Positions 27,900 to 54,637 of a stretch of 64,000 nucleotides of DNA are shown in pieces. Position 1 is the first letter of the stretch, and each line of letters begins with the position of its first letter. The translations under genes were made by a program, and so were the position numbers. The notes under the pieces were generated by a model. That model was not told where the DNA came from. It ran no database searches and saw only the letters and a list, made by a program, of their open reading frames with translations. The stretch is from Oopsacas minuta (taxonomy: Eukaryota; Animalia; Porifera): the NCBI GenBank assembly GCA_024704765.1, contig JAKMXF010000111.1, positions 359,113 through 423,112 on the forward strand, in the 5' to 3' direction.

Positions 27900-29420
27900 T
27901 AGTACTTGTAAGAATTTCCCTTGCTATTAGAGGAATTATTTCCAATAGAAAATGGATTCTAATTCCCTGAAAAAACTTGTTACTAAGCGGACACCACTAC
28001 AGTTACTCCTATACTCCTACTGTTACACCATAATATATTTAGGAACTATTCTATTGCTATCATTCTGCAGACCATTTATTCAATATTTACTGCTTGCATT
28101 CGCATTCTTATTAATTGGAGCTCTAAGCAACACATCCATTTTATTTGGAACAGGTTATGAATCACATTGTAGTTACAGCTGACATAAGTAGTTTCTACCA
28201 TTCACTGATCATTCTATTATCATACAAGTTATACTGTAAATGAAATAATACAGAAACAAATTGAAACAGAATACAGTGGAACTTCATTTATACGAACACC
28301 AGCGGACGGTTAAAATTAGTTTGCCTTATCCAGAGTTCGTATTTACTAGAGTAATCATAATAGAATAGCGATTGCAGGGAACTCATTTTGTGTGAATATT
28401 GATTTCTTTAGACTTAAGAAAAAGATAGGGAGGAGTTTGAAGTCATTGATTTTGTGGAGGTAAATACTGTTGTGCTGATAATGGGTGTACCTGAATAAAA
28501 TAGCTTTACTCTTGAGTTTTTGGCTTACCTGTGGTGGTTGGATGTATTCAAGTACTGTAGTGTATATTTGTTCAGCTCCACCGCTTTTGATATGACATCT
28601 ATATGATCCTTACACATTAACTGACAATTCGCTGATTCCATTTTCGCTAGAATCGGCATTCCTAGAGTTTTATACATTGCCTCCTTTAGCTTTCTAGTCA
28701 CATGAGACTGTTCTATTATTATGAGACTATGTATCAGTTCTACAGGCTAGATATATTGATGAGGATGTCGTTGGTGATGGATTGATATTGTCCATTCTCT
28801 CTCATAGCAAATGCACTACCTATGAAGAAAATAACTTAAGCTAGAGTCCTAATTAGCTATTTCTAAATTAGTTTTGTGTACATATATAATTATCTAGTTA
28901 TTAACAGTATGATAAATCATCGAAATGTTCATGACATTACTTACCTGGTTTTCTACAAATAGGTTCTCTGTTACTACTAGAATGGGTAGAAACCCATACA
29001 AAATAACCATTAATTGCAATACAACCTTCAGGAGCATTTATTATAAGCTCCTGAGTATATGTTACTGGATAACCATCTTCCCTATTTGATAATTCATTGT
29101 AACTCGAATAATTCAATCCAATCCACACAGGTGTATCCAATGAATTACCAGGATAATTCGCTACAAGATCTGTAACATTCATTCTCATTTTCTGAATTTA
29201 TACTTGTTAAATTTCCTCCTCTTGTAATGCAATTTTGTCCAGAATTCTCCCAACAAATATAAGGCTCCTAGATATAACTAATACACTATTGTTGAAGAAT
29301 ACATCACAATCTGTTCCAAAATCTAATAACAAACAAAGATATATCCATTGTAGAAATTTAAAATCTCTCCAAGATCTAGTAACACATTCATAATCTGAGT
29401 AATCTCTGATAAAGCAAATT
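27900..29420 (-). pseudogene. Decayed C-type lectin / Ig-like receptor relic (gene C)
   Basis: Frameshifted CTLD exon (DCDVFFNN..., CITRGGNLTSI, PVWIGLN, CIAING, ICRKP|gtaag at about 28945) and an Ig exon at about 28540-28820 (ENGISELSVN*GSYRCHI) with stops. Confidence 0.6.
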
Positions 29421-29549: not shown

Positions 29550-32072
29550 TATGGTTGCTCACATACTATATTTGTAGTTGATTGAAGAATACTTAAATTA
29601 TAGCATATCAAAAGATTGAGAGGAAGTTATATCACAAAATATCCCAAAGATAACAATAAGCTTAATTGCATACCCAAACAACATATTATAGATTCAGTAA
29701 ATATTCCCCTACAAACTAATCACTAAATTTATATATAATTATTACATGCTATGTTAAAACTAAGGAAATATTATCATAATTCTGATGGTTGTAACTCGAT
29801 ATATTATTGCCTACACATTAGAGGCAGCTTGGTATTTTATGTTTGTGATGTAATCATATTAAATATTTCTTTGATAATTTTCATATCCAACCTTTATTGA
29901 ACAACTTGGTTCTTCAAACTGAGGTACACTATTGTACTTTGCTTGTTTGTCATCTTTGCCGATTCATATACCACATTTACTCAAATAGTAGCCCCTCCTC
30001 GTACAATCATCATAATCGCGCGCTACATTTGGGTGACTGCGTACACAATCATTGCTGTGATAAATCTGACTCCATAGCATTTAAACTACGATAGACTAAC
30101 ATAATGACTTTCATATTAATCATATACACTGGCTAGCTTGATACTAGAATCTCATAAATGTAACCTAAAACTCTTCATTATCTTCTCTAATTCATAATTG
30201 CATGATTTATATTGCCACGTTACAAAAAAAAGGAATATTCCCTATCCTATAGGAAAAACAATAATTATGAACCTGTTATCCATTTCCTATAATCGCATTT
30301 ACGTTTCCATATTTTCTATTCATGGTTGTGTGGGCCCGATTATGCACTATTTTTGGACACTTTGTAAAAGTCCACCCATATGGTAACACATTAGTAGGTT
30401 ATCATTGCATCATTAAGCTCCGCTAACGTACGTAAATACAAATTGATGATGCAATTATTAGCAATTATTGAACAATCTTTTCATGATAATTTTAGGTAAC
30501 ATACACTTAGCTATGAATTTCTTAATTAGAAATTCATTGTTCGTCTTATCTGGAAATTCATAGTAACCATGTTTGTATTAACGAGATTCCACTGTATTTC
30601 TCAAATCCTGCAAAATCTAGTAAGCAAGTATAATATGAAACTGATTCGCATACAAACAATCATAATTATCATTGAACATGTCTCATTGTCTATTAGAACA
30701 CAGAATATACAACTAGTAATATATGTATATACGAATATGTATAACAATGAATACAGGAAACTTAATAGAAAAATATTCACAAAATGTCAAAACATCACGA
30801 TGTAAATTAGAGATGAATAGAACAATATTCATTAAGGAGAGAATAGCAAGTTGTATAACACGCCTATAAGAGGAATAGATAATAGAAATATTGTGTGAAG
30901 AATTGGTATAAGAGTGTTATAGATGGACTCACGTTCTGCCGAAATTATAATTACTTATCGAATTGAATATGGAAACATTAAAACTAGTCACACAAAATAA
31001 TACTAGATAATTGAGCTGTTAAAAGTGATAACATTGGTAAGCTTGAAGGGGAAGGTTTACCCTGCATTTCCACAGTTTTCTCGTTTACCCTCCAAAAGTG
31101 ATGTCGTTGCATTTTTTGATAGTCCTCTATCTTACGAATACGTGGAAAAATTTAGAGCTCTATCATAAATCCTCCCGAAATATTTGGGATTATCGCTACA
31201 TGCCCTAATTTTGTCATCAAACCACCCAACCATAAGTGCAAAGTACACCCCAATAGACACATTTTAGTAAAATTGATGCTATACCAATTATTGCATAAAT
31301 ACGTAGTATCTATATATGTATATAACATGTATGTATTCATTTCATAGCCCTATATGGAAATCTTTTATTTGCAAACAGTGGCATTTTTCATGGGAGTAAG
31401 TGGTGTTTCTTCTTCCTCGATTTTCCAAAAACGTTTTCAGCCGCAATTTTCGCCTAGCTAAAACTACCAGACTAGGCCAGTTGGCCTCTATGTCAGATAG
31501 ATTCTAAAACTCAACCGTTTTGAATAACCTGTATGAAAATTGTCTCACTTCTTTATCAAAAAACACAATTTGAGAAAATTTCACGAATTTGATGAATTTT
31601 GTGTATCCGTGTCAAACCAACAACCCAACCATAATTGACCAAAATAATGATATATGTTGTATAATGAATTCTAATCGAGAAATTTTGTCTACAATGGATC
31701 TGGAAATTTTTTAAGATAATTCGAGGAATATAGACAGCCAGTTTCTCAAAGAACAATTGAAGGAATTGGATATAGAAAATTTGCACAGTTTTTACTCATA
31801 TTGTTACGGGCAAATATTATCGTATTTTGGAATCTACACAGCTGTCCAGATTCGAAGTAAAACTTCCATAAAATCGGATAACTGAAACAAGTATAAGTAC
31901 TCTAGGGTATACTTTCCCTTTGAACAGAAAGGTATAGTAATAATCATTGAATTGCGATTACTAAAATAGATATCAATTTGAAAATATTAATAAGTAATTT
32001 AGATTGGAAACTGATACCAAGAATCCGAAAAATATTTTCAGAAATTTGAAATATTTACGTAGCAGTAGGAAG

Positions 32073-35000
32073 TCATTGAGATATATCGTCAATACAATAT
32101 ATTTTCTTATAAACGAGGACAGGAATGTATATGACAGTTAGAAAATACTTACCAAGGTAGGAACCATGTTCATTCTCTGTCTACGCGAGTTCTTAACAGC
32201 ATTGAAGATATTGATAGATTTTCTTATGTTAAGTTCTCTGATAGAATTCAGCACTGTTATTATAATGCCAGTCTTAGAGATACCATCTTCACAATGTATT
32301 ATTATAGGAACATTATTTGAGTCTTGTTTCTGTTTCATAATTCTGATCAAAAGTATATCAGCTAAAGCCATTTCAAGTACAGTACCATCTTCATTCCATA
32401 TTGGAGATATACACTGAGTAAATGAGTGTTCCTTTCCTACTAAAGTATTCTTCAAAGAGATTTCCTGTTTCACAAATGCATTGGTTTCAGTAGAATTGAT
32501 CAAAGTAGAAACAAAAGGTTCACAATTGATAGGTTCATCCTTCTTAGGCCAGTAACAGACACGATTAGATATTCCACTGAGTATCTTAGCTTTCTCCTCT
32601 CTCGTAGTCAGCATTATCACCATACTAGCTTCTGTTTGATAGATCATTTGTAGGAAATCTAGATGTGTCTCTTTAGTTGGATTGATGGTAGCAATGAATT
32701 GATAATCATTAATATAGCTAGCATTGATATAATTACAGTCAAAATGTGGAGAATCTAATACAACTCTGTTTTCATCAAATGGTAGAATGTTTTTGAATGG
32801 ATTTTTCTGCAAACTTTCCTCTTTCAGTGCATTGTCACTCTCTAGTACAACAGTCTTCTTGGATTCTTCGTTTAACTTTTGAAATTCTACAGAAAGTGAT
32901 GAATCTTCTCCAATTCCAGATTCTACATACTGTTGATATTTGATAGGGAAATCTTTCATAGGTATGAATTTAGCAGTGAATTTCTTGTTTTCTATTATAG
33001 GACTCATTGGTGTGTATTTCTCATAATTCTTCATTTCGCTATTACCACTTTGCTCTGTTTCATTAACTATTTCGTGTGGAATATTTGAAAAATATGCAAA
33101 ACCACGTTCATTGGGGTTAATTGTTTCGTCCAGGGTTGTCAATGATGTCTCATTTGTTATCACATACTCACGATTTGGATATGTTGAGAGATCTATGTAC
33201 TCTTTAGTTTGTTGATTGGCTTCAGGTTGATTTTCATAACTAGGATAACCTCCTCTACCTCCTATATTGGAGTAAGTGGGATTAGAATGTTCAGACAGTT
33301 TGGCTTTATTAGATTGCCTTCTAATCTTTACGCATAATAAGATGAATATTGGAGTTAGAATAATTGTCGCTACAATTATTGCCATAATCAATAACACATT
33401 TATTATTACTATGGTTATCAAAGGAATGTTTGTTACTGCTTCTGTAGGATTTGTTGGAGTTGTCACAAGTTGTATAGAAATATGAGCCGTAGTGTACTTC
33501 ACACCATAACTTGTAGAACGAATAAGTGATATGTTTTCACTAAACGTTAATTGAGGAATAATATACGTAGATTTGATCATTGTATCTTCTTGATTTGAAA
33601 TCATCCATTCACATTCAGGTAGACTGCAGGTTAGCGTAATGTCTTTTGTTCCTTGAAGTATACTGATTACTTGTGGAGATGGAAACATTAGATTATTCAC
33701 ATCACTGAATGACATATTGTATCCTTCATAGCTGACAGTTATTGTAGCAGTATCTAGAAATTATGTAAAAGAAACCTCAACATATAAGCTATAGAGATAC
33801 ACATTTTGTTGCTATGTGTGGATCTCATACACATTTAACAACCAATTTACCTTTGAGAGCTAGTTGTATAGTACCTAACAGTGCAACAGGACTCATCCTG
33901 TAGAAACAACTGAATGTATGTAAACCAGCTCCCACGTCGTTGAATACTACAATCAGTAGAGCTGGATTTGGATACTCAGCACTATATGTCAAAATGTCAC
34001 CGTCTTCTACATTGTCTGTTGTCCAAAGGATCTCATTATCTGCGACCATATCATCAGAGTAATAGAGCATTGAGACAATTGAATCCCGAGTATAATCAAC
34101 TTCTTGAAAAGGGCCATCAAAGCTTGTTATCTCAACTAGAAATACAATTATCAAGTAATATCAATGAAGAAAGATGGTCTAACAGTCTATTACACAAGAG
34201 CTACCTAGGGAATCTGTATTCACTATAAAGAATGCGTATGCCATATCTGAACCAATTTCACAGCTGTAGTATCCAGGTTCATTAGAATTCACAATCAAAC
34301 TACTAATCCCAGTTTCAATAGAGAATGTTGATAATGAAGTTTTGTCTATTTTCATACCATCCTTTGTAGCCATAAAATACCACGCTACACTATCTCCTAT
34401 ATTCGAGATTGAACACTGTAACACCGTAGAGTCTTTTAGTAAAATTGTTGAATCGTTTGAGATTGAATCAGTTGATGAAGTTGAAATTGGATTTGTCACA
34501 AAATAACCTAAAGTAATCTCGTGGTACAATATGTTTAAAACTCGGTTGAAAAAATATTTGTTTCAAACCAACCATTTCGGATTAATTCTGCCTGAATCGC
34601 AATCACTTCAATTCCATCCCAGTTCATGATATAGAATTGATACAGTCCAAAGAATTCATAATCAAGAGTTGCATAAGATATAGTTTGAGAAGAAGAATAT
34701 GTAATATCTGGAAGTTTCCATCTCCCTTGTAGATTTGTTGAGATAGAGAAATCTTCTATTCCAATCAGAAGTTCAAACATATTCGTGTCAGGGTATACAG
34801 TATTGAATGCTTGATCTGATGTAGATGTAGATACTGTAATTATTGGAGCTACAGAGAGAATTTGAATGTGAAATAACTGAAAAATACACTATAAAGCTAT
34901 GTAAATTGTGTAGTTCCCAAGATAAGAATTCCTCAAATTATACTAGAAAAGTACTTATTTCATAGTGTCTATATGCATTATCGCCAAATATGTATAGTTA

Positions 35001-38000
35001 AAATTGCACTTGTCTTCGTGGTTTGTTCAATAGGAATATACACTTACTATATATATTTACTGTATTCAACAGGATGATATTATCGTTACTATCACAAGTC
35101 AATTGATTACTCTGTTCAGGTGAGTCACTGCTCCATTCAAAGATATTTATAGGATTGTTCAATATGCTTCCATCTTCAATACTCCATATCAAGCTACTCA
35201 AGCTATAACTACTGTTCATAGGATCACAAAGCAGTAATACATTCTCTCTGTCTATACCTACTGTATATGTGTAAGTAGTTTCTGTTACGGCAACTAAAGG
35301 GAAAGAATACTAATAGATAACGATAGGCCATTATAACAATCTAGATTCCAAAGCGTCGTGCCAAAAGGTTCGAGAATTGTGAAAGTATGGGTTCCCTATA
35401 TATCTTCCAGACTCTTACCAACACTTCATAATCAATTCAATACTTTTATAACATATTTGATACCATGTTCCCCACCACTTACTTGTTGTAGTTTGATTGA
35501 ACAATCCAATTGTATAACTATTGATATCGTCTATTTGACACTGATAATATCCTTGTCTAGTATTATATATGTCTAACCAACTGATTCCAGTTTGTGTGCT
35601 ATTATTTGTGGTTGTAAGCTCTTCAATATTTGATAGATCTGAATTTTCTGAAAATTTCCATACAATAGCATTATCTTCGTCTCCTCCACAAGCTAATGTC
35701 AGTGATTGGTACAAGAATCTGTTTCCACTCATAGATTGAAAGTCTAAACCTTCATTGATAAGTTCACCAAAACTGGCACCTATATATGATCTACATGAAT
35801 ATTGTTCAGCTGAAAACCAACGAAATTGAATGATTATATACTGACCTGTTGTTATAATTGAAGATCTTTTGCATAGAAAAGTATTCCTTGTGATTCCACA
35901 GCTTACAGTCCCCCAACTACCCTCTCCAGCTCTTATTATGTCAACACAATCTTCGTTACTAATAGATGGTACCATGCCTGTCCAGTTTGTATGACTATAT
36001 ACTGAACCATCAGTCCAGGTATAACTTCCATCTCCATCTCTATCATTCAATCCTATCCAGCAATTACTCACTGTATCAGGGATAATAGTGTATAAGTAAT
36101 TATTCTCTCTCTCTGTAGTAATACTAGTCAAGTCGCCACCCCATACAGCACAACTAGATTGAGCATCTAACCAGTTGATTCCATCACTCACTTCAAATAA
36201 TCGATAGCAAAAGTCATCATAGATCAGATCACATCCTTGTGAGTTACCTATTCAAAAATGAAAATTTGAGAATACTTATTTCTAGTATATTCAATTATAT
36301 AAGAATGGAATTGAATTGATACTGTATGTCAGAGTTTCAACCTTGTAGTATGAATTATCTTGAAGTACTCAATTTCGGGTTGTATACTTTTATCTACTAT
36401 CACTCACCTTGTTTATTGCAAAAGTAACAGAGTCTAGTTAGTTGGCAACCTCTATTAATCCAACCGGTTGATAATACACATCCGACTTGGTATCTGAATC
36501 TAACACAGTCATATTCAGGATTCGAATCTGAGGGGCTTGATATTCCATAATCTGATTGAAAGTTCCTATAAGTACTGTTGCTACCATCTACCCATACAAA
36601 TTCACTAGTATCAGTACCGGCCTCTACATCTATATCATTTAGACCAATATAACATGAAAAAGTATCTAAATCTGTTATGCTATAGAACAATAAGCTGTCT
36701 TCTTCTGCTGACTTGATTGTAGCAAGGTTTCCTCCCCAGTTGATGCAATAAAGTTGAGCAGTTATCCAGTTGATCCCAGAAGAAATCGTAAAATATCTAA
36801 AAGTGTTACCATCTAATATAAATTCTTCTTCTGGATTCATTTCTAACAAACAAGATTATCATTGTTATTATTATATTAATACTCAAATTTTAATTTCCAC
36901 GAGTATAAATATTACACATATATCAAGTAATTATTACCTGTAATAGCTGGTGAAGAAGAAAGATTAACTTGTATAGCACACACATCAACTCCATCCCAGT
37001 TGTTAATATAGAATTTGTATAATCCAGTATTTCCTTCCATGAAATTATCAATTGTTGTAGTAGATCCAGTAGGATTTGTAACACCAAGAACAGTCCACTT
37101 TCCAACAATATTGGTAGAGAGAGTAATATCTTGTGTTGATAATGGAATAGCAATTTCATTCACAGCTGGACAGAGAGCTGTGAATTTACTAGCACTGATG
37201 CTACCAATTTGAATTGATATTTCTGGAACTAAAACAAAAACACAATATTATTATTGGTCTCCTGGAATCTACAATGTAACATGTGCAGATAGAGACCAAT
37301 ACGATCTTTCCGCATGATTTCATTCTAACGACCAGGCCATTATGTGGTCGCTACTAATATATCTCCCTGCATACTTCATATCAGATAATGAAACAACCAT
37401 AACTGATTAAATAGTTACCTTGTATGCTGATAAAGTTTGAAAATATAATATTTGAATCTCTCATACAATTTAAGCCAGTAGATTGTTCTGGTAAATTATT
37501 CCTCTCATTGTATATGTTGATAGGATTTAGGAAATCTCCACTACCTGTTAGAGACCACTTCAACATACTTAAATCACCACTGATCACAGGATCACATAAC
37601 AGTAATACATCCTCTCTGTCTACTCCTACTATATATACAAATGGAGTACCGTCAGATGCAACTAAATGGAACAATTTAATGTCAATAGATTAGTAAGTGG
37701 GACAATAATATATAGAAATATGTTGAAACACACAAAGATATACTCACCTGTTGTTAATGAATTATCATATAAACCAATCGTATAAGTTTCTGAATTGACT
37801 TGACACTGATAATATCCTTGTTTGGTAATATCAACTGTTAACCAGCTCCATCCTGCTTCTGTACTACTATATGTTGCTGTAAGTACTTCACTATCTGATA
37901 GATCTGAGTTTTCTGAAAATATCCATGTAATAGCTATATTTTCTTCTCCTCCATAAGCTAATGTATTTGAAATGAACAAAAATGTGTTTTCACTAATTGT

Positions 38001-41000
38001 TTCAAAGTCTAATCCTCCATTAGTAAGTTTCCCAAATCCTCCAACTAAAACATGATATGTTTTATTAACTGATTCCAATAGCTTATTATTTATATGGGGG
38101 ACGCAGAAAATGACCCAAAACCGAAGTCGGAATTTGACCTAAAATATTAGCTTGGGAGAGCATGTATATAATGATTAATTAATTAAGTTTAATAAACCGT
38201 TTTGTTTTCTAAATGGATTTATAAAAATGGATTTCTAGAAACGAGGACGTGATAGGACAATTTATATTGCATTAATTAGAAACTCTTTACCATTGGGAGG
38301 GGATTAGGGATTTAGTTCACTTCCTTATTGGTCTGGGAGTTTCATTTGTACTCGTTGTTAAGCTACCTATGGGCGGGGATGTGGACAGAGTGCAAATTTT
38401 GTGTTTGTATCTACTTTTGTTGGATATATTATTAGAAAACCGTTTGCAAATTCCTACTACCAATATTATTGTGGGTCAAATTCATGAGTCCCTTTATATG
38501 ATATTGTAGTATTGCCATTATACCAACCTGTTGTTACAGATGAAGGTCTTTTGCATAGAAAAGCATTTATCGTTGTTGTTTCACAGTCTACTGTCCCCCA
38601 ACTACCCTCTCCAGCTCTTATTATGTCAACACAATCTTCATTACTAATAGATAGTTCGCTCCCTGTCCAGTTTGTATGACTATATACTGAACCATCAGTC
38701 CAGGTATATGTTCCCTCTACACTCCTATCATTCAATCCTATCCAGCAATTACTCACTGTATCAGGGATAATAGTGTATAAGTAATTATTCTCTCTCTCTG
38801 TAGTGATACTAGTCAAGTCACCACCCCATACAGCACAACTAGATTGAGCATCTAACCAGTTGATTCCATCACTTATTTCAAATAATCGATAGCAAGATCC
38901 TTCATAGATCAGATCACATCCTTGTGAGTTACCTATCAAATTAAGTAACTAAATTAAATAAAAGTATTTTCAACAGTTTAGTAAATTGAAAGGAACAAAA
39001 TACATTATATTATATTATATTTCCCAGTTTAGAATTTTCCTTCCTTATCTGTATTATTTTAGTGTCACCATTGTCCAGGATTTATACATCAATACAGGAT
39101 TCTCGAGAATAATATTTTGAATACTCGGTTGTTAAAATTATGTGATTAGAGATCAACTCCCTGAAGATGTCTAGTTTTACCCATAGCATACTATTGCTAT
39201 ACATAACACATCATAACTCATTTTAGAACCTGCATGCAGTTAATATATAATCTTGCTATCACACAGCTATGTCTTTAGCTTTTCTGAAAAATATCCGTAG
39301 ATTCTTAAACTGGTTACCAATACCAGCGGCAGCTTTGTAATGTTAAATGAGATCTCACGCTATTTCTATTACAAAATTGAACATCCATTTATATTTCAGG
39401 GGCGGATCTAGAAAAATCTGGTGGGGGGGTATGCCGCCTACCCAAACGTCATAATATTCAATTATTGGATTTTGCTCTTTTACTTTATCATTATTTGTTT
39501 TTTCCCTTATTTTAACAAATTGTAATTATACTATAACAGCCAGTATTTCTCAATATGTAGTGTTTTAACCCAGCATCAACAAATATTTCATAGTGATGTA
39601 TGGATTTTATGCGATTTTTATGTTAGGCTTAATCTCCATGACCAATTTAACCATTTTGACAAGTATTCTAAGGTACTCCAAAATAATTGTGTTCTTAATA
39701 CAAACATTATGTATGTGTGACGAAATAAATAATTTCACAAAGCTGGTGGGGGGGTATGCATACCCCCCATACCCCCCCCTAGATCCGCCACTGTTATATT
39801 TTTATATAAATTCTTGTCAAATGATTATTTATATATTGTCCAGGATCTTGCCCAGGACTTTGAAAAATATTTCCTCGAGAATTCCAGAAATATTAATGTA
39901 TGATGCTCCAATATACTGGAATTAGAACTAAATATGCTGGTCACCGTAAAATGTATTTTAGAGGCTTATTTTTTACTACAATCACTTACCTGCTTTGTTG
40001 CAGAAGTAACAAGACCTGGTAAGGGCACAACGTCTATTAATCCAACCGGTTGATAATACACCTCCATTACTTTGGTATCTGAATCTAACACAGTCATTAT
40101 CAGCAGCTTCTGAGGGACTTGCAATTCCAAAGTTTGATTGGAAGTTCCTATAAGTACTGTTACTACCATCAACCCATACAAATGCACTAGCATCAGTACC
40201 TGCCTCTACATCTATATCATTTAGACCAATTAAACATGAAAAAGCATTATCTAAATCTGTTATGCTATAGAACAATAAGCTGTCTTCTATTGTTGACTTG
40301 ATTGTAGCAAGATTTCCTCCCCAGTTGATGCAATAGAGTTGTGCAGTTATCCAGTTGATCCCAGTGGAAATTGTAAAATATCCAAAGGCGTTATCTTCTG
40401 ATATAAATTCTTCTTCTGGGTTCATTGCTAACAAACAAGATTATTATTATTATATTAATCATCAAATTTTGATTTCCATGAGTATAAAATGCATTACATA
40501 TATCAAGTAACTATTACCTGTAATAGCTGGTGAAGATGAAAGAGTAATTTGTATAGCACACACATCAACTCCATCCCAGTTGTTAATTTGGAATTGGTAT
40601 AGCCCAGCATTTCCTTCCATGAAATCCTCAATTGTTGTAGTGGATCCAGTAGGCTCTGCTACCCCAAGAACAGTCCATTTTCCAACAATATTGGTAGAGA
40701 GAGTAATATCTTGCGTTGATAATGGAATATCGAACACATTCATAGCTGGACAGACAGCCGTGAATTTACTAAGACTGATGCTACCAATTTCAATTGTTAA
40801 TTCTGGAACTAAAGGAATAGACAATATAAATACATGTATTGTGGAATCCACAATGAAATATGTGCAAATGGAGACCAATACGATCTTTCCGCATCATTTC
40901 ATCCTAATGGCCAGTCCATTATGTCATTTATATGGCTGTACTAATATGTTCCCCTCACAGCCTACGAAACCAAAGCCTATCCACGATATTTAACAATGGA

Positions 41001-44000
41001 TAACTTTAAGTCTCTTAAAATTGACTTGCAATTTTATTTTTATCGATAAAACAAAACCGGTGCATTTTGGCTCCAATAAATGTATAATTGATGGTTTTTT
41101 AATTTACAAATGCCATATTATCCAACTATTACCAGTTTGAAATGACGTCATCTGTTTGGTTAGTAGGGTAAAATGTTGTACTATTTTGAGGCTCTGATAA
41201 ACGATCACTACTGCCTCTTCCATTCCAGAATTTATATCAAGTGATATAAGGATGTTTATACATATATTATAAATTTTTGTAATTATTAAGTTGTCACGTT
41301 ACTGAGTTCTATTAGATACCATGGATGGCACATATTTCGGCAATATCGACTTTTAACTCGATAGTCGCTAGAATTATTATCAATTAAGTCCAACAAATAT
41401 GTGCTACATAGCCAACGTCCCATACCCTTGTCATATATTTTCATATGATATCTCAAACCGGTATGACGCAATCGTGATTATGCCCATATTTGGTTATTAT
41501 CAAGATTACGCAATAGTGCTTCAAGATATCATATGAAAATATATTACAAGGGTATGGAAAGTTGGGTATGCAGCACATTTTGGTTGGACTTAATTGATAA
41601 TAACTCTAGCGACTATCGAGTTAAAAGTCGATATTGCCGAAATATGTGCCATCCATGGTACCTAATATAACTCAGTAACGTGACAACTTTATCATTACAA
41701 AAATTTTATAATTTATATATAAACATCCTTAGATCACTTGGTAGTAATTTTGGAATCGAAGATGCAGTAGTAATCGTTTATCAGAGTTGTAAAAATGGTA
41801 CATTTTTCACGATATTTTTCCCTTCTAACCAAACAGATGATGTAATTTCGAGCTGATAATAGTTGGATACTATGGCATTTGTAAATTAACCATCAATTAT
41901 ACATTTATTGGAGCCAAAATGCACCGGTTTTGTTTTATCGATAAAAATATAATTGCAAGTCACATTTAATAGACTTGATGGTCCATGAAATTCTAGTCCG
42001 TGGATAGGCTTTAGTTGCGTGAGTTGTGTGTTCTCCTGTATACTACATATCAGATAATGAAACATCATTGATTAAATTGTTACCCTGCACGCTGATAAAG
42101 TTTGAAAATATTATACTTGAATCTCTCACACAATTTAAGCCAGTAGATTGTTCTGGTAAATTATTCCTCTCATTGTATATGTTGATAGGATTCAAGAAAT
42201 CTCCACTACCTGTTAGAGACCACTTCAGCATACTTAAATCACCACTGACCACAGGATCACATAACAGTAATACATCCTCTCTGTCTACTCCTACTATATA
42301 TACAAATGGAGTACCTTCTGTTGCAACTAAATGGAACAATTTAATGTCAATAGATTAGTAAGTGGGACAATAATATATAGAAATATGTTAAAACACACAA
42401 AGATATATTCACCTGTTGTTGATGAATTATCATATAATCCAATCGTATAAGTTTCTGAATTGACTTGACACTGATAATATCCTTGTTTGGTAATATCAAC
42501 TGTTAACCAGCTCCATCCTGCTACCATATTCTCATAGGTTGCTGTTTCTGGCTGACTAGATGATAGATCTGAATTCTCTGAAAATAGCCATGTAATTGCG
42601 ATATTCTTTTCTCCTCCATAAGCTAATGTATGTGGGCTGAACAAAAATGTGTTTTCACTAATTGTTACAAATTCTAATCTTCCATTAGCAAGTTGTCCAA
42701 ATCCTCCAGCTAAAGCAAGAAATAATATAATGCTGAATTCAATAGCTACTATATATGGTATTGTAGTATTGTTTTGATACTGACCTGTTGTTACAGATGA
42801 TGGCCTTTTGCATAGAAAAGCATTTATCGTTGTTGTTTCACAGTCTACAATCTCCCAACTACCCTCTCCAGCTCTTATTATGTCAACACAATCTTCATCA
42901 ATAACAGTTGGTTCACTCCCTGTCCAATTTGTATGACTATATACTGAACCGTCAATCCAGACATAAGTTCCATCTCCATCTCTATCATTCAATCCTATCC
43001 AGCAATTACTCACTGTATCAGGGATAATAGTGTATAAGTAATTATTCTCCCTCTCTGTAGTGATACTAGTCAAGTCACCACCCCATACAGCACAACTAGA
43101 TTGAGCATCTAACCAGTTGATTCCATCACTTATTTCAAATAATCGATAGCATGATCCTTCATAGATCAGATCACATCCTTGTGAGTTACCTATCAAATTA
43201 AGTAACTAAATTAAATAAAAGTATTTTCAACAGTTTAGTAAATTGAAAGGAACAAAATACATTATATTATATTATATTTCCCAGTTCAGGATTTTCCTTC
43301 CTTATCTGTATTATTTTAGTGCCACCATTGTCCAGGATTTATACATCAATACAGGATTCTCGAGAATAATATTTTGAATACTCGGTTGTTAAAATTATGT
43401 GATTAGAGATCAACTCCCTGAAGACGTCTAGTTTTACCCATAGCGTACTATTGCTATACATAACACATCATAACTCATTTTAGAACCTGCATGCAGTTAA
43501 TATATAATCTTGCTATCACACAGCTATGTCTTTAACTTTTCTGAAAAATACCCGTAGATTCTTAAACTGGTTACCAATACCAGCGGCAGCTTTGTAATGT
43601 TAAATGAGATCTCACGCTATTTCTATTACAAAATTGAACATCCATTTATATTTTTATATAAATTCTTGTCAAATGATTATTTATATATTGTCCAGGATCT
43701 TGCCCAGGACTTTGAAAAATATTTCCTCGAGAATTCCAGAAATATTAATGTATGATGCTCCAATATACTGGAATTAGAACTAAATATGCTGGTCACCGTA
43801 AAATGTATTTTAGAGGCTTATTTTTTACTACAATCACTTACCTGCTTTGTTGCAGAAGTAACAAGACCTAGTAATGGTGCAAGCTCTATTAATCCAACCG
43901 GTTGATAATTCTCCTGCGAAATTGTTATATCTGGTTCTAACACAATCATGATTAGCGATTTCTGAGGGACTTGGTATACCAGGATTTGATTGGAAGTTTC

Positions 44001-44998
44001 TATAAGTACTGTTACTACCATCTACCCACACAAATGCACTAGCATCAGTACCAGCCTCTACATCTATATCATTTAGACCAATATAACATGAAACATAGCT
44101 TATATCAGGTTCTGGTGCACTATAAAACAATAAGGATTCTTCTATTGTTGACTTGATTGTAGCAAGATTTCCTCCCCAGTTATTGCATTCTAATTCGGCA
44201 TTTGTCCAATTTATTGGGCTCGCTATGAAGTATCCAAATGTTGTATCATCATATGTTAGAGAAATATTAGGAGTTTGTGCTTAAGAAAGAGATAAAGAAC
44301 ATGTTATTGAATTTATACGTTGGTATATTGACTAGCTAATTCTATACTAAATTGTTTAACCGAACCGTTTTGCAAAGTCCTTGTACATATATATCCTAAT
44401 ATTTACGTATAATTGTAGATTATGTGTCGGACAAATATTACAATTATTATATCGTTAAATGTATACCATGTGGCCGTCCAAACTTTGATTGAATTACTAG
44501 GACCTGCATTACGATATTGTAAGGAACCTCTAGCCAAGCGTATCGTAGCAGGTAGCAAATATGGATACATTGAATTGAACTCCACGAATTGTGGATTATT
44601 ATGGTATCCAATGCTATATTATTGGGCTGTAGCTTGGCTCGTATCAACAGTATAACCCTATGAATATTGGTTTGGCAGAAACCTAACCAACCTGGCCGCC
44701 TTTATAGCAATGAGTATATGCTAGGGTCAATTATGATATTTACCTATTCTGTTTATTAACGACCCCCAAGTGCAGTAGCTGGACAAAGGTCGTCATGACA
44801 GACACCCGCTACAAGCTATCGTATAAAAGTTATGATAATAAGGTTCGACTGTTTATGAAAAGTACGCACATGCATATACTTATTTGCTATTAGCTAAGGC
44901 AGAAATTTTAAACATAATAGATAGTTACCTGCTAAGATGCCGTAAAGTGAAGCACTTATCGTGAACAATAGAACAACTTGATAAAAGTTAGTTCCCAT
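32073..44998 (-). CDS. Gene B: C-type lectin / Ig-like receptor with a single atypical protein tyrosine phosphatase domain (at least 2421 codons)
   Basis: Exons: 44998-44929 (signal MGTNFYQVVLLFTISASLYGILA), 44279-43842, 43189-42785, 42709-42413, 42326-42084, 40808-40518, 40427-39990, 38932-38528, 38044-37748, 37661-37419, 37228-36938, 36842-36408, 36247-35846, 35779-35483, 35293-35048, 34848-34573, 34507-34205, 34135-33851, 33753-32153 (Ig-like, TM, PTP). A small terminal exon near 32105-32073 is uncertain. Confidence 0.85.
32153..32890 (-). other. PTP domain of gene B with degenerate catalytic motifs
   Basis: KNPFKNILPFD, YINASY, IATINP, DFLQM, CYWP, PIWNED, IIIHCEDGISKTG, RRQRMNMVPTL. Confidence 0.9.
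38098..38492. mobile_element. MITE with a 9-bp TSD (Mutator-like)
   Basis: TIRs GGGACGCAGAAAATGACCCAAAA and (reverse complement) GGGACTCATGAATTTGACCCACAA; TSD TTTATATGG/TTTATATGA. The paralogous intron 42710-42784 is empty. Confidence 0.75.
39397..39793. mobile_element. hAT-type MITE (397 bp)
   Basis: TIRs CAGGGGCGGATCTAG / CTAGATCCGCCACTG; perfect TSD TTATATTT; empty site at about 43646. Confidence 0.9.
40956..42028. mobile_element. Foldback element (1073 bp, Mutator-like 9-bp TSD) in a gene B intron
   Basis: Arms of about 500 bp are inverted around about 41495; TSD TGTTCCCCT/TGTTCTCCT; the paralogous intron 37229-37418 is empty. Confidence 0.88.
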
Positions 44999-46081: not shown

Positions 46082-46376
46082 CTATAGTATTGCAGTATCA
46101 TAGTAGTACTCATTCTTCAGTGCGAAGCAAGATAAGTAGTGATTCTAGAAAATATACATATATACAGTTCCACACTGAAAATGGCTCAAAATGTAAGCAT
46201 TTCGGTCGAATGTGCAAATTTTAGTTTGAAACAATAGGTTGTGGGGAAAATAGTAACTCACTAACTCTGGGATAGAATTCATTCTTTCACTTCTCAATTT
46301 CTTGATAATTTGGAAAATGTCAACCTCATTCCTCCCAATACTTTCCTGTATAGCACTAAAGAGGAGTTCTACCAGT
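46082..46376 (-). pseudogene. Orphan 3' end of a receptor PTP gene (two exons)
   Basis: 46376-46262 reads LVELLFSAIQESIGRNEVDIFQIIKKLRSERMNSIPEL|gtgagt; 46144-46082 reads NHYLSCFALKNEYYYDTAIL*. This matches the PTP C-terminal VDIF..V..LR..R..M pattern. No upstream exons found. Confidence 0.65.
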
Positions 46377-47111
46377 CTAAAACACAATTAATCTCAATTT
46401 AATTTATCCGTTTTATGCATACAAATGTATAGGATAGATTATGAAGTAATTTGACTGAGGTTTGCTGTACTATCAGTATATGGAAAATTTAACTTTAGAG
46501 ATATATTCTTACATTTATCTGTGTTGTAGGCAGTTAAAGAGTTAAATTGCTCAAATTACTATTAATAATAGAATTCTTGTGTATTGGAGAAGTTCTGTTT
46601 GGAAAGATGTTATTTTATGATGAAGGAATGAGAACAGAATATTTGTTCATTTTGATAGTATTTGTGCTGCAGATATTGTCAGCTATTGGACAAGGTAATA
46701 AATATATGTGAATTTACTGGGTATTACTTATAAGAACACTAGTTATCTAATATAGGAACCATCCTCTTGAAAACGGTTCTCATATTTTGTATAATTTACA
46801 ACGATTATGAGAACATATGTAGCTACTTCCAAGGGTGTTCTTATAAGCGATAACCATTGTGTATACAAATAGCAGTTAAATTCGTACTCATTTTGCTGAG
46901 TACACAAGTATAAATCGAAAATTCCTTATTTATAATATATAGAAGGGGATGATATTTCATTATTCTCGTAAGAGTTTTGATGGGATTTATGATTTCTTAA
47001 TTTTCTAGAACCTCAAATAACAATATCAACCATAAGCACCCCTTACACAGACTTACCTCCTGACAGCAACACTGCAGAAATATTGTACTAACTCAGGATG
47101 TTGCTTTAGAA

Positions 47112-49497
47112 CAGGGGTGCCCAACATACGGCCCGCGGGCCAAATCTGGCCCGCGTAATAATTTTATCCGGCCCGCACAAAATTTGCACTTTGTAATATA
47201 TACTATTTCTTCATGAACAATTCCTAAGCCACATTTCGATAGCATTCATACTGGGTGTCGAATTTCAATGTATTTGACATTTTGAGGATTCTTATTGATT
47301 TTAATACACGACAGGTGCATGTGTTTAGTAATAATAATCCTTAGCAGTGTATAAATATAAACTAGTATAATTCTAAGCTTATAATTGAAATTCAGATACT
47401 GCGTTTACTCATCTCCTAAATTACCTGTAGAATATATATATCATTTATATTAATGGAGCCTTGTTCTAAGAAAAGGAAAGTTGATATCGAGAGTAGAACT
47501 TTCAACGACAGCTGGACCGAGAAATACTTTTTCACCAACTTGCTTAATATGCAAGCAAGTCATCGCAGTGATGAAAGAGTACAACATCCAAAGACACTAT
47601 AGTGCTAAACATCAAGATTACAAAGCATGCTCAGGGCAGATACGGAAGGATAGAGTACAATCATTAATAAGGGAACTTTCGGTACAGCAAAATATTTTTA
47701 CAAATACTAATTTCTGAGTCAGAAAAAGCTGTTCGTGCAAGCTTTGCCATTTCCAACCTTATTGCAAAGAAATATAAGCCATTTACTGATGGTGAATTTA
47801 TCAAGGAGTGTCTTATTACTTTGGCGCAAATTATGTGCCCAGAGAAACAGAAGTTATTTGAAAACATTAGCCTTTCAAGAATGACAATTAGCCGTAGGAT
47901 AGAGAACTTATCAACAGACTTAAAACTTACTTTAGAAAAACGTGTGAGTGAGTTCCAGTACTATTCTCTGGCCCTTGATGAGAGCACAGATGCCACTGAT
48001 ACTGCCCAACTTGCTGTTTTTGTAAGAAGAATCGATTCAAAGTTTAATCTTACAGAAGAATTGGCGAACTTACACAGCCTTCACGATAAAACAACTGGAG
48101 TTGATATTTATAAAGCGGTGATGAATGGAATTGATGCTATCGGACTTAAGTTGAATAATTTATGTGAGGTAACGACAGATGGCGCACCATCAATGATTGG
48201 GAAGGAAAGGGGCTTCGTTGCTCTTCTGGAGAAAGAAAGGATCAATTCAGGAAGTAGTACTATGAAATTAGTCACAGTGCATTGTATAATTCACCAGGAA
48301 AATCTCTGTTCAAAGTCATTAATAATGCAGGGTGTAATGGAAATAGTAGTGAAAACTGTCAACTTCATTCGTGCTCGAGGACTCAATCATCGACAATTTC
48401 GAAAACTTTTAGACGAAATGGATTCTCAATATGGAGACCTTCTTTACTATACGGAAGTACGATGGTTAAGTAGGGGTGCGATGCTTCGACGCTTTTATGA
48501 ACTCAAAGAAGAAGTATTTCATTTTATGGAGGAGAAGGGGAAACCAGTTTTTCATCTCAATGATCCATTATGGTTGTGTGACTTGGCATTTTTGGTCGAT
48601 ATCACTCAATATTTGAATAACCTCAACTCAAAATTACAAGGAAAAATCTGCTTATTCACAATTTGTTTGACTTCATTTGCGCTTTTGAAAGAAAGCTCGA
48701 GATATGGGAAAAACAATTAATAGAAGGAAATCTTTATCACTTTGAAACCTTATCAAAACATTCCCCTCCAGATACAGGTGTATACGCAATCGAAATCAAT
48801 TCCCTGCACAAAGAATTCAAGAATAGATTTAAAGATCTTCGTAGCAATATTGTAAACTACGCTATATTCTCAAATCCTTTCTCTTTAGAACCTATTGAAC
48901 TCCCCGAGCATCTCCAGCTAGAATTGGTTGACATGCAATGTAACCAGGACTTGAAAGCAAAATTCAATGATGTCACACTGATGGACTTTTATCAAAAGTA
49001 TTTATCATCATCAGATTACCCCAATCTTATCAAGCATTGTAAGATGATGGCTTGTTTATTTGGGAGCACATACATATGTGAACAACTGTTCTCCCAAATG
49101 AAGCTAGTAAAAAGCAAATGCAGAACTGTTTTAACTGATAGACATCTCGAAGATACATTAAGAATAGCTACTACGGATATGGAACAAAACATCGACCATA
49201 TAGTCAGACCTATGCGTCATCAATCGTCATCCATGTCAAAGTAGTAAATCATTGTCTGTACTCGTATTAGCGGTGGTAAAATGAGTATTCGGGTTTCTTA
49301 TTAGTTAGTATTTTTGATCATTTTCTGTAGTCTGCCAATATTTCATTTGTGTGTTCCCTTTCTGTAGCATTTCCACTTGGATATTCCAACAAATTTTCTC
49401 TAAATAAATCTGAAAATTATAAATTGGTCCATGTGGCCCCACCAAACTATTGAGGAAGCCAATGTGGCCCGAAATTAAATCGAGTTGGGCACCCCTG
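47112..49497 (+). mobile_element. hAT transposon of the SPIN/Charlie (GTF2IRD2-like) type, 2386 bp, frameshifted
   Basis: Perfect 14-bp TIR CAGGGGTGCCCAAC; TSD CTTTAGAA (47104-47111 / 49498-49505). Transposase runs from ATG 47453 (KRKVD..R.F...W) through SLALDESTD, TTDGAP, HCIIH, RWLSRG and GSTYICEQLFS to 49244. Confidence 0.95.
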
Positions 49498-50382
49498 CTT
49501 TAGAAGCTAATATAGCAGGGATATGGGAGAGACCTGACAAAACAAATACTAACGATAATACAATCAATTTTGATGTTTTCACTGTAGCCAATGTTGGTTG
49601 TACAAATTTTATGCTGATGATAGAAACGGAGAATTAACTATACAGATTGTCATTTCTGGTACAGGTAAATATTGTATATATCACGTCTGTAAGTATGTAC
49701 GTCAATAAATATTGTGGAATCCGCCTATTAGCTACTATTTTCATCGACATGGTCATAAAGTGATGGTTTGTATGGTAATTTGTGTGTATAATAGAAAATT
49801 GCTTAATAATAGAACAGAGCTTAGAGAAAAAGTATTGGCTATACAACTAGATATATCTGTCGATCACGGTTGAAGATTTATGATCGTAATGAAGAATAAC
49901 CCAAATAAGTTATTACTTCGTTTTCTGCATTTCCGACAATTTCGATATTTTTACACCGTGATGACGTCATAAAATCACACATCTTGCAGACCGTATTCGG
50001 TTGAACTAATGTAAATTGAAAAAAGTATTGATATACAATATTTCTTCCAGGTAGTAACTTTGCTGAAATGACGTCATCAGGAGTATACAACTTACTCTCT
50101 GGTTATGAAGTGTTCTATACTGATACTACATTAATTTGTACTACAAGTGATACAACTGTACCTCAATGGAGTTATGTAGGAATTCCAAGTGGTAACAATG
50201 CATCATTAGGCATATGGAATTCTGATACAGGGATAAGTACATTGAATATACAAACAACAGCATAGGGATATTTTACATATATTGTAGGAGCGACCTACGC
50301 CATCACTGCATCTGTATTTGATCCTAGTATTACAACAGGTAAGATAGAAATAGAATGTGTATTAGTAAAATGAGTATTTGAT

Positions 50383-50631
50383 CAGAGATGGAACTGGTTG
50401 GCATTTTTATGACCCGACCCGACTGGCCTGTCAACCGATTGTCCGATCAATCTTATGCAACACTAAATAATAATGAATGAGCATAAATCTTATTAATCAT
50501 GTTATATTATATTATGAATCACTTCAATAACGAAAATAGACCTCATTACAAGTGTTATAAGCCTTATTTAAGTTATTTCGAGTATCAAATTAGTTCAACC
50601 GGTCGGTGAACCTTGGCCGGTTCCATCTTTA
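50383..50631. mobile_element. hAT-type MITE (~250 bp)
   Basis: TIRs CAGAGATGGAACTGG / CCGGTTCCATCTTTA; TSD TATTTGAT/TATTTGAA. Confidence 0.7.
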
Positions 50632-51149
50632 TATTTGAACATATTCATGTGTAATTAGTTGTGAAGCAAGGAGGAAATACTCATACTCATACTCTAAGGA
50701 AGTAGATTCTTCAGATATACAACTGTTATGTACAAATGCTATGGACAGAGCATTACCTGATATGAAATGGAGTTCTTTTGAGAATCCTGTAGTTCTCAAT
50801 AATGTACCAAACCAAGAATATGATACATTTGAATGTAAATTAGGATCTGGTGTTATACTAAGTGTAGATCTATTAGTACAAGGTGAGTACCTGTATTTTA
50901 CTTTCAATAAACTTTGAATGTATTATTCCAAAATTGGTTGGTTTCAATAGGTCCATCGGAGATAATATTATTCTCTACACCGGTGTCAGAGGGGCAGTGG
51001 TCCCCCGGGTGAGCTGTCCCCCCGGACTTGTGGCACTAGGGTCAGTAGTCCTCCTTTTGGGTCAGAAGTCCCCTTTCGGCACTAGGGTTAGTAGTCCTCG
51101 GGTTGTATGTAGAAAATACCAAATTAGTAAATACAAGTGATACTTTATT

Positions 51150-51321
51150 GGGAGTACTTATATAAAGCTGAGCTATAGTAGAGCACAGTTTTTTGTCTAA
51201 TAGAAAATCAGAAAACCGGAAGGTGTTAGTCAAAGTCGGGAGGTGTTAGTTCAAAACCAATAAAAATTCAATAGAGAAAAAACTGTGCTCTAGTAGAGCT
51301 GAGCTATATATAAGTAACCTC
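51150..51321. mobile_element. Mutator-like MITE nested in the Ginger element
   Basis: Perfect 9-bp TSD TACTTTATT (51141-51149 / 51322-51330); inverted arms of about 45 bp (TACTTATATA.AGCT.AGCT.TA.TAGAGCACAGTTTTTT). Confidence 0.8.
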
Positions 51322-51489
51322 TACTTTATTATACTTGTAGATGTTGCATATACCACAGAGTGATTTACGTGACAAATTTATATTGGAACTTACGATAACA
51401 TTCAAAAACTCATTGGTTGAGTATATATTAGTATACATTTGAAGTTATACTGTAATTTCTCAATTTTCTTGCATTTGATTATCTACAAT

Positions 51490-54074: not shown

Positions 54075-54637
54075 GTAGAAATATTTGAATTTGAAATAGG
54101 TTTCACTAGTACAATACAAAGGTATTTAGAAAGTAGATAATATCTTTGGATAAATCCGCACTAGTGCCAGAGGTCCGCTGGGGGACATCTGACCCAAAGT
54201 GGGGACTACTTACCCTAGTGCCAGAGGTCCGGGGGACACTCCACACTAGTGCCATTCGTCGGCGGGACTCCTTGCCCTAGTGCCACTAGTCCGGGGGGAC
54301 AGAATTTAGGGAGGACACATGACACTACCACACCGGATACAGTATATTCTAAGTTGCCTAATGAGATGAATAGAGCTCAAATATTGGCATTATCTCAGGA
54401 TGTTTTGCTGGAAACTGACCTCAAAGGAAGATGGGAAATTGATGGTTCTTCAATCAATAACAGTTAAATCCTATTTAAGCCATTTACTGTAGATATGGGT
54501 GGTTTGTACAAGTACTATGTAATTGGTTGGGGTGGTACAGAAGCTTGGCAATTCAAATTGAGATTTTAACTTCAGGTAAGTGAATAAATTGTAGTAAATA
54601 TTATTATTATATATCAATTTATGCTATATATAATATA

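Follow-up and report, generated by a model that had tools for sequence, protein, structure and literature searches.

Receptor protein tyrosine phosphatases (RPTPs) with two phosphatase domains in tandem combine a first domain, D1, with a second, D2, that is inactive or nearly so (PMC2638020) and for which a noncatalytic docking or regulatory role is expected (PMC9640194, PMC2638020). The D2 of PTPRK, for instance, docks Afadin with no need of phosphorylation (PMC9640194), and in RPTP-gamma D1 is occluded by D2 in a head-to-toe arrangement (PMC2638020). Two further kinds of receptor carry degenerate phosphatase domains, namely PTPRU, a pseudophosphatase able to bind substrates and to compete with phosphatases that are active (PMC7320164), and the R8 group formed by IA-2/PTPRN and phogrin/PTPRN2, which are type-I membrane proteins with one degenerate classical protein tyrosine phosphatase (PTP) domain (PMC2638020). 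On the ectodomain side, the mannose-receptor family (PLA2R, DEC-205, Endo180, MRC1) consists of type-I receptors with multiple C-type lectin-like domains (CTLDs), many of which lack sugar-binding motifs. Here, we describe a gene that recalls each of these systems and differs from each of them. It lies on the minus strand, from 44998 to 30807, of a 64,000-nt stretch of DNA from the glass sponge Oopsacas minuta (assembly GCA_024704765.1, contig JAKMXF010000111.1, positions 359,113 to 423,112, forward strand; G000:C111:359113-423112 in our numbering), hereafter the window, and it combines six CTLDs, 12 immunoglobulin (Ig)-like exons, a transmembrane (TM) helix, and one PTP-like domain. The assembly searched comprises 61.46 Mb in 365 contigs, and all searches and fold predictions were run on single exons, by reference. 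With a probability of about 0.6, we consider that this gene is functional, that it belongs to a glass-sponge family of type-I receptors expanded in tandem, and that it derives from lectin-fold/Ig RPTPs through the loss of D1 and is a signal-on or scaffold counterpart of its phosphatase-active sisters.

The PTP-like domain, the only one in the gene, as the first-pass annotation of this DNA had proposed, is encoded together with the TM helix in exon 19 and matches Pfam Y_phosphatase (PF00102) at E 1.6e-42 over profile positions 2-221 of 234, the remaining helix being found in exon 20. The four deviant catalytic motifs listed in that annotation hold up column for column in the alignment to human RPTP-alpha (6uzt), in which KNPF falls on KNRY, WNE on WPD, HCEDGISKTG on HCSAGVGRTG, and MVPT on MVQT. 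The Cys of the CX5R P-loop is kept and its Arg is replaced by Lys (HCEDGISKTG), the Pro-Asp of the WPD loop becomes Asn-Glu (WNEDG aligned to WPDFG), the Q-loop Gln becomes Pro (MVPT), and the Tyr of the phosphotyrosine (pTyr) loop becomes Phe (KNPF), this Phe in place of the pTyr-stacking Tyr being variable across the family; the P-loop moreover holds two acidic residues. The deviant motifs KNP, WNED, HC[EQ]DGISKTG, and MVPT are maintained in 120 aligned homologues (~36–66% identity), and the ratio of nonsynonymous to synonymous divergence (dN/dS) against four paralogues is 0.20–0.34 in the PTP part versus 0.5–1.0 in the juxtamembrane segment. Because the motifs are shared by the homologues and the dN/dS of the PTP part is low, the degenerate motifs are, to judge from these alignments, a conserved state under purifying selection and not decay. 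Since the Arg/Lys, Asp/Glu, Gln/Pro, and Tyr/Phe changes co-occur, and since a WPD-to-WPE change on its own already lowers activity by about three orders of magnitude (~1000-fold; PMC2638020), we infer that the protein is catalytically inactive toward pTyr. With Lys in the place of the phosphate-binding Arg and two acidic residues in the P-loop, even the pTyr binding that the first-pass annotation proposed for the degenerate pocket is doubtful to unlikely.

If the first-pass annotation saw in this domain a mutated catalytic domain, the comparison with tandem RPTPs leads elsewhere. In O. minuta and in a related organism, tandem RPTPs have a canonical D1 (VHCSAGVGR[TS]G and MVQT) and a D2 with WNE/D, IHCxDGxGK[TS]G, and, in several cases, Pro at the Q-loop Gln. 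This deviant signature (WNE/D, HCxDGxxK[TS]G, Pro in the Q-loop) is common to the O. minuta tandem-RPTP D2 and the gene studied, as is the position of an intron after "..P.L", and the PTP-like domain is 36–44% identical to the D2 of tandem paralogues versus 26–29% to their D1 (BLASTP). The alignment to tandem RPTPs begins in the last ~30 residues of D1 and the linker, D1 proper being absent upstream. Among solved structures, the PTP-like domain best matches tandem-domain chains of RPTP-alpha, -epsilon, -sigma, and LAR; by domain, the D2 of 6uzt scores 76.5 bits versus 68.6 for its D1, whereas in RPTP-sigma (4bpc) D1 ranks above D2. Because of the D2-specific motifs, the shared intron position, and the higher identity to D2 than to D1, the domain is, on these sequence grounds, a D2-type domain left alone after the loss of D1, and the gene a D1-less, D2-only derivative. 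It shares the fold of tandem-RPTP D2 domains (vertebrate R4 and R2A types, the closest being the O. minuta lectin-fold/Ig RPTPs with D1 and D2), but, unlike tandem RPTPs, it has no D1 and places its D2-type domain alone behind a segment of tyrosine motifs; with no D1 in cis, this domain cannot recruit substrates to a D1 in cis. As side observations on these exons, the synonymous divergence of the PTP exon from two paralogues (L003/L004, on C99 and C345) is 0.20–0.25 in the PTP part and 0.7 in the part encoding the Ig-like module IgZ, a difference within one exon that suggests gene conversion or mosaic ancestry among paralogues. An isolated minus-strand segment of the window (46148-46387) encodes only the last ~45 residues of a D2-type domain ("...MNSIPEL" followed by GT), near-identical to the D2 end of a tandem RPTP (P0129); nothing more of a PTP domain is found upstream of it between 46 and 64 kb of the window, a stretch full of transposon open reading frames (ORFs), and the segment is probably a relic.

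The other described receptors with degenerate domains are more distant. PTPRN is not among the 60 best solved matches of the PTP-like domain, which are of R4 and R2A types. The luminal part of PTPRN contains a RESP18-homology domain, and the R8 ectodomains are unrelated to that of the gene studied, carrying no CTLD/Ig arrays; the gene studied, which derives from a D2 domain, is not an R8 member. PTPRU follows the same logic of an inactive sister beside active ones: with both of its PTP domains inactive, it still binds what its active paralogues act on and may be their competitor (PMC7320164), but it keeps the D1-D2 tandem and has a MAM-Ig-FN3 ectodomain, when the gene studied has no D1 and a CTLD/Ig ectodomain.

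This ectodomain is not private to the pseudophosphatase. In the gene studied, the exon order runs from a signal peptide through three cassettes of five exons (CTLD-B, CTLD-A, Ig1, Ig2, Ig3) to IgX, IgY, an exon encoding IgZ, the TM helix, the tail and the PTP-like domain, and finally a C-terminal exon. Three loci, two on C345 and one on C99, have the same order immediately upstream of a D2-only PTP exon; C16 shows a similar arrangement with apparent frameshifts, and on C17 CTLD and Ig exons lie further from the PTP exon, the number of cassettes per family gene ranging from one to three. A contig of the related organism, whose CUX1 shares 77% identity with that of O. minuta, carries tandem genes of the form Lectin_C x4 ... 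Y_phosphatase. Phosphatase-active sisters use the same parts: the one at G000:C345:194944-206563 (L031, L026) has a signal peptide, two CTLD/Ig cassettes, and a last exon with IgZ, TM helix, D1, and D2 (194.9-197.2 kb), of which D1 reads KNRF, WPD, VHCSAGVGRSG, and MVQT, and D2 has Met for the P-loop Lys (HCQDGAGMSG). Its identity to the gene studied is 91% in the signal-peptide exon, 74% in CTLD-B, 85% in CTLD-A, and 86% in Ig1, and further tandem RPTPs with CTLD/Ig arrays are found on C17 and C312. A third type of tail occurs in the neighboring gene (window 11231-20273, minus strand), in which three CTLD/Ig cassettes (40–90% identity to the gene studied) are followed by IgY, IgZ, a stalk made up of TNP[IT] repeats, an uncharged TM helix, and a tail of 70 aa that bears two YxN motifs; a PTP domain is absent from it. 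Because active D1+D2 and short-tailed paralogues carry the same cassettes, the family, and not one gene, is the unit of interest.

At two sister loci, these receptors are poorly represented in the current annotation. At C16, the locus is halved in NCBI into P0258 ("C-type mannose receptor 2") and P0091 ("RPTP epsilon-like"), which meet inside the IgX exon. A further NCBI model, P0087, begins within the IgZ exon, at an internal Met, and lacks a signal peptide; the NCBI models at C16 and C17 split or truncate family receptors. The view that the architecture stands outside described families agrees with our finding none with it in the searchable literature, where we came across neither a CTLD-bearing RPTP clan nor stand-alone D2 receptors and where the names "RyPTPR4a" and "PTPRLec" return nothing; the nearest ESM Atlas clusters (all scores <0.9, and leads only) include none that pairs Lectin_C with Y_phosphatase. 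A sea-urchin "PTPRLec" may exist.

The gene itself was reconstructed exon by exon. Open minus-strand segments between 45.0 and 32.1 kb can be joined in frame by GT..AG introns, and the resulting model has 20 exons, 7,320 coding nt, and 2,439 aa, with GT..AG splice sites throughout, compatible phases (including between exons 18 and 19), and no internal stop or frameshift; all 18 introns of the ectodomain, from exon 1 through exon 19, are in phase 1. One open frame from lectin to PTP, as claimed at first, is thereby upheld, as are six CTLDs in three modules of identical order. The end of the gene is not at 32073, however, as a last exon (30863-30807) had been overlooked: a GTAAGT donor at 32152 comes right after "...MVPTL" and a 1,289-nt intron leads to this exon, which scores 93 (BLOSUM) against the C-terminal exon of P0087. 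Two other endings were discarded, namely a read-through end ("...MVPTLVSIF*") at 32138, ruled out by the GTAAGT donor and the matching last exon, and a candidate last exon near 31.9 kb ("GKYTLEY..."), dropped since all places but 30863-30807 score at most 20 against the P0087 exon. The first exon is 77–91% identical to the first exon of paralogues, and an NCBI protein of O. minuta, RyPTPR4a, is 98–99% identical to the DNA studied. The exons are as follows.

44929..44998, minus strand: exon 1, start codon (ATG at 44998) and signal peptide with hydrophobic N-terminus (23 aa plus 1 nt, ending in phase 1), donor GTAACT
43842..44279, minus strand: exon 2, CTLD-B1 (Pfam Lectin_C 33.6 bits, E 7e-08; phase 1-1)
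42785..43189, minus strand: exon 3, CTLD-A1 (Lectin_C E 2e-16)
42413..42709, minus strand: exon 4, Ig-like type 1 (a), with an invariant W and GYYxC signature in 13 copies
42084..42326, minus strand: exon 5, small beta-sandwich module type 2 (a), "Ig2", with invariant C22, W35, and C65 in 13 copies
40518..40808, minus strand: exon 6, Ig-like type 3 (a), AlphaFold2 (AF2) model with Ig structural matches
39990..40427, minus strand: exon 7, CTLD-B2 (Lectin_C E 5e-07)
38528..38932, minus strand: exon 8, CTLD-A2 (Lectin_C E 3e-18)
37748..38044, minus strand: exon 9, Ig-like type 1 (b) (81% identity with exon 4; in the type 1 alignment)
37419..37661, minus strand: exon 10, module type 2 (b) (92% identity with exon 5)
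36938..37228, minus strand: exon 11, Ig-like type 3 (b) (81% identity with exon 6); donor 36937 joined to 36842 in contigs of run X1
36408..36842, minus strand: exon 12, CTLD-B3 (Lectin_C E 2e-09); acceptor backed by the joint 36842/36938
35846..36247, minus strand: exon 13, CTLD-A3 (Lectin_C E 1e-17); a 66-nt in-frame intron follows, with a paralogue-like spliced contig there
35483..35779, minus strand: exon 14, Ig-like type 1 (c), subthreshold Pfam Ig; donor 35482 joined to 35293 in contigs
35048..35293, minus strand: exon 15, module type 2 (c), in the type 2 alignment; acceptor backed by a spliced contig
34573..34848, minus strand: exon 16, Ig-like type 3 (c), in the type 3 alignment
34205..34507, minus strand: exon 17, Ig-like X (Pfam Ig_3 and Ig_2 below cutoff); donor 34204 joined to 34135 in a contig
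33851..34135, minus strand: exon 18, putative Ig-like Y, kept in 8 paralogous loci, no Pfam match
32153..33753, minus strand: exon 19, putative IgZ, TM helix (~aa 108-140 of the exon), tyrosine-motif juxtamembrane region, and D2-type PTP-like domain to "...MVPTL" (Y_phosphatase E 1.6e-42)
30807..30863, minus strand: exon 20, the closing 18 codons, which encode the final PTP helix, and stop; TTATAG acceptor, phase 0 with donor 32152

Transcript data were drawn from Logan contigs (one sample, four runs of unknown kind). Joints of the CT..AC type, that is GT..AG on the minus strand, coincide precisely with the predicted introns 36937-36843, 35482-35294, and 34204-34136; at intron 35845-35780, a contig resembling a paralogue is spliced, and one contig runs unspliced across the intron between exons 18 and 19. 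Transcription and splicing at the locus are supported; the full-length single transcript stays a prediction.

All six CTLD exons score above the gathering threshold of Lectin_C (PF00059), with 30.9–67.1 bits for a cutoff of 22.6. The nearest solved relatives of CTLD-A are CTLDs of PLA2R, DEC-205, and Endo180 (single-domain E ~1e-13 to 1e-07), but the gene is not a member of the mannose-receptor family, as it has no ricin-B or FnII domain, its CTLDs alternate with triads of Ig-like modules, and its tail bears a PTP-like domain, when the tails of that family bear endocytic motifs only. Cassettes 1 and 2 are 86–95% identical in DNA, introns included, which marks them as the outcome of a recent internal tandem duplication, cassette 3 being much older. 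Pairwise dN/dS values of the ectodomain exons are never clearly above 1, the top ones being 0.84 in CTLD-B1 and 1.0 in Ig3c (on very few changes), and diversifying selection on these exons is therefore not claimed.

Where the first-pass annotation counted nine or more Ig-like domains, we find 12 Ig-like exons, with uneven support for the fold. No Pfam Ig profile passes its cutoff on them. The AF2 model of Ig3 (exon 6) has eight strands, a predicted local distance difference test (pLDDT) score of 81, and a predicted template-modeling score (pTM) of 0.73, and it matches Ig domains of MDGA1, RAGE C2, KIT, and NCAM at Z 6–8 (Foldseek, VIA). Support is weaker for Ig1 and IgX: the 13 aligned copies of Ig1 display a C..W..YxC pattern, its profile finds solved structures weakly only (NCAM2 and titin Ig domains at E ~0.5), and its third copy (exon 14) has subthreshold Pfam matches to ig, Ig_3, Ig_4, and Ig_5 (E 0.07–0.1), when IgX yields the best Pfam value of all with Ig_3 (E 0.0075), next to Ig_2 (E 0.056), both under the cutoff. 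The modeling proposed for these exons thus favors an Ig fold for Ig3, but for Ig2 it gives a pLDDT of 70 and a best Z of only 4.7, a generic beta-sandwich at best.

Between membrane and PTP-like domain, the tail carries the four tyrosine motifs reported at first reading (TYSNI, SYENQ, EYIDL, TYPNR), of which only YEN and EYIDL are conserved, TYSNI and TYPNR being unconserved in the family and a conserved site of the EY[MV]TI type having been overlooked. Among 113 relatives, the conserved tyrosines are those of GYENL (Y in 83), KEYIDL (78), and EYMTI (97), along with one more YxN. A pattern resembling the immunoreceptor tyrosine-based activation motif (ITAM), YI[DE]L-x7/8-YMTI, is present in 56 of 120 relatives, the closest paralogue included. 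As for potential readers of such motifs, the genome contains at least 56 SH2-coding stretches, and on C309 an SH2-SH2 pair adjoins a PTP match. Separately, a single ORF on C151 (G000:C151:4579-6474; L023:280-2175) displays an unusual architecture, in which three SH2 domains accompany a caspase-like domain (Peptidase_C14, E 7e-07).

The rest of the window contains several features around the receptor genes. A single-exon ORF of 418 aa (25262-26518, plus strand) is coiled-coil-like at its N-terminus and contains NHL/beta-propeller repeats (Pfam NHL E 1e-07) but no RING. Between it and the 3' end of the receptor gene, short segments at 28940-29267 (minus strand) carry CTLD-like motifs (WIGL..., C-terminal C..K) with no Pfam match, and may be a degenerate CTLD exon. 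On the other side, 47481-59902 (plus strand) is occupied by transposon-derived ORFs, among which two hAT-type elements (Dimer_Tnp_hAT E 0.002 with subthreshold DUF4371, and E 3e-09 with zf-C17orf113), one retroelement integrase core (rve, E 4e-10), and an ORF with weak likeness to Ulp1/YopJ-type peptidases. Lastly, a 371-aa ORF (60913-62025, minus strand) with several hydrophobic helices, tandem "KPxPVIKSTNTQ" repeats, and a Pro/Asp-rich end has no Pfam match.

On this basis, the following scenario can be proposed. A lectin-fold/Ig RPTP ancestor would have lost its active D1, and the resulting protein would not dephosphorylate pTyr. Its ectodomain could bind the same ligands as active paralogues, or similar ones; upon clustering, the tail tyrosines would become phosphorylated and recruit SH2 proteins, and the D2-type domain may serve as a phosphorylation-independent docking or regulatory module, like the D2 of vertebrate RPTPs. 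The place of the gene beside its phosphatase-active sisters would then be that of a signal-on or scaffold counterpart, as in paired immune receptors by analogy, so that its most likely role is that of a noncatalytic, tyrosine-motif signaling or scaffold partner of these paralogues. Several observations weigh against this scenario. In the Logan contigs, the lectin exons are never linked to the PTP exon, and the contig joints have short sides (21–26 nt), to some of which paralogues at least 95% alike may contribute. The sugar/Ca motifs EPN/QPD and WND are absent from the translations of all six CTLDs: CTLD-A has EPT, ELS, or VPS at the sugar-motif sites, with WEIVD, WGTVD, or WGTVS, and CTLD-B has neither EPN/QPD nor WND and carries WIN, so that sugar binding is not implied and "lectin" names the fold only. 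The tail reads YIDL-x7-YVIT and is thus degenerate with respect to the ITAM consensus (YxxL/I-x6-8-YxxL/I). A Syk-type kinase was not found, the two tandem-SH2 ORFs that were checked both having no kinase domain. Finally, conservation is striking in the catalytic Cys and throughout the HCxDGISKTG loop, and may reflect chemistry or redox sensing in place of mere docking.

This last point opens a first alternative, according to which the domain is not dead and the protein is a redox-sensing or atypical enzymatic receptor, through catalysis on something other than pTyr or through reversible Cys oxidation. The Cys and its loop are indeed kept both in the 120 aligned homologues and in the D2 of tandem paralogues, the domain is under purifying selection, and redox-sensitive Cys chemistry is on record for a pseudophosphatase domain (PMC7320164). 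Nevertheless, four catalytic positions are altered together and the acidic loop residues are unfavorable for phosphate. We know of no Cys-based PTP that functions with its P-loop Arg changed to Lys. Activity is, moreover, already negligible in D2 domains whose changes are milder (PMC2638020), and we hold an enzymatic or redox-sensing receptor to be unlikely.

We would give no more credit to a ligand sink or dominant-negative, in which the protein competes for ligand or caps the D1 of its sisters head-to-toe and sends no signal of its own. The membrane-distal end is 74–91% identical to an active paralogue, the juxtamembrane segment is near neutral between closest paralogues (dN/dS 0.97), and head-to-toe occlusion of D1 by D2 has a precedent in RPTP-gamma (PMC2638020). 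A complex prediction for the D1 of the active C345 paralogue with the D2-type domain scored 0.00 and speaks neither for nor against binding. Against an inert tail, however, the YEN, EYIDL, and EY[MV]TI tyrosines are kept in ~70–85% of 113 members despite the fast evolution of the segment, which argues for tail signaling.

As to an artifact, in which the lectin/Ig and PTP exons would be separate genes, the gene a pseudogene, or the third cassette an assembly duplication, it is very improbable: NCBI does annotate "C-type mannose receptor 2" and "RPTP epsilon-like" separately at C16, no spliced contig spans exons 18 to 19 (one being unspliced there), and cassettes 1 and 2 are 86–95% identical in DNA, but the NCBI PTP models lack a signal peptide and begin at an internal Met in Ig-like exons, a single Ig exon is shared out between the two C16 models, exons 18 and 19 are phase-matched, the architecture recurs at at least five loci (C345 twice, C99, C16, C17) and in another species, 7,320 nt run with no stop or frameshift, and duplicated cassettes that are 5–14% different are no collapsed-repeat artifact.

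A signaling or scaffold partner of active sisters also invites a comparison with the paired receptors of vertebrates (KIR, LILR, SIRP, Ly49), which are clustered paralogues with near-identical ectodomains, opposite cytoplasmic wiring, and tyrosine motifs in their tails. By analogy only, the O. minuta set resembles them in its shared ectodomain and differing tails, although its "off" arm has a built-in phosphatase where the vertebrate receptors have an immunoreceptor tyrosine-based inhibitory motif (ITIM) that recruits one, and although the TM helix of the short-tailed form has no charged residue. Taken further, the analogy would make the family a glass-sponge paired-receptor system for self/non-self or microbe recognition, a tentative and rather doubtful extension, in which one rapidly duplicating lectin-fold/Ig ectodomain would be set on three tails: an active D1+D2 ("off"), an ITAM-like/YxN segment with a lone D2 ("on", possibly capping the D1 of its sisters), and a short one.

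For the RPTP family, whose ectodomains usually consist of Ig, FN3, MAM, or CA modules, the locus reveals a whole clan built on lectin-fold/Ig cassettes of freely duplicating phase-1 exons, when domain-architecture surveys would miss the receptors at C16 and C17 because of the split or truncated NCBI models there. A stand-alone D2 is also a natural experiment on what D2 does when D1 is gone. Lastly, one ectodomain with an active, dead, or short tail, in tandem arrays kept in two species, is a testable candidate for a primitive paired-receptor system; if that reading were true, immunoreceptor-style tyrosine logic, whether ancestral or independently invented, would be present in one of the earliest-branching animal lineages.

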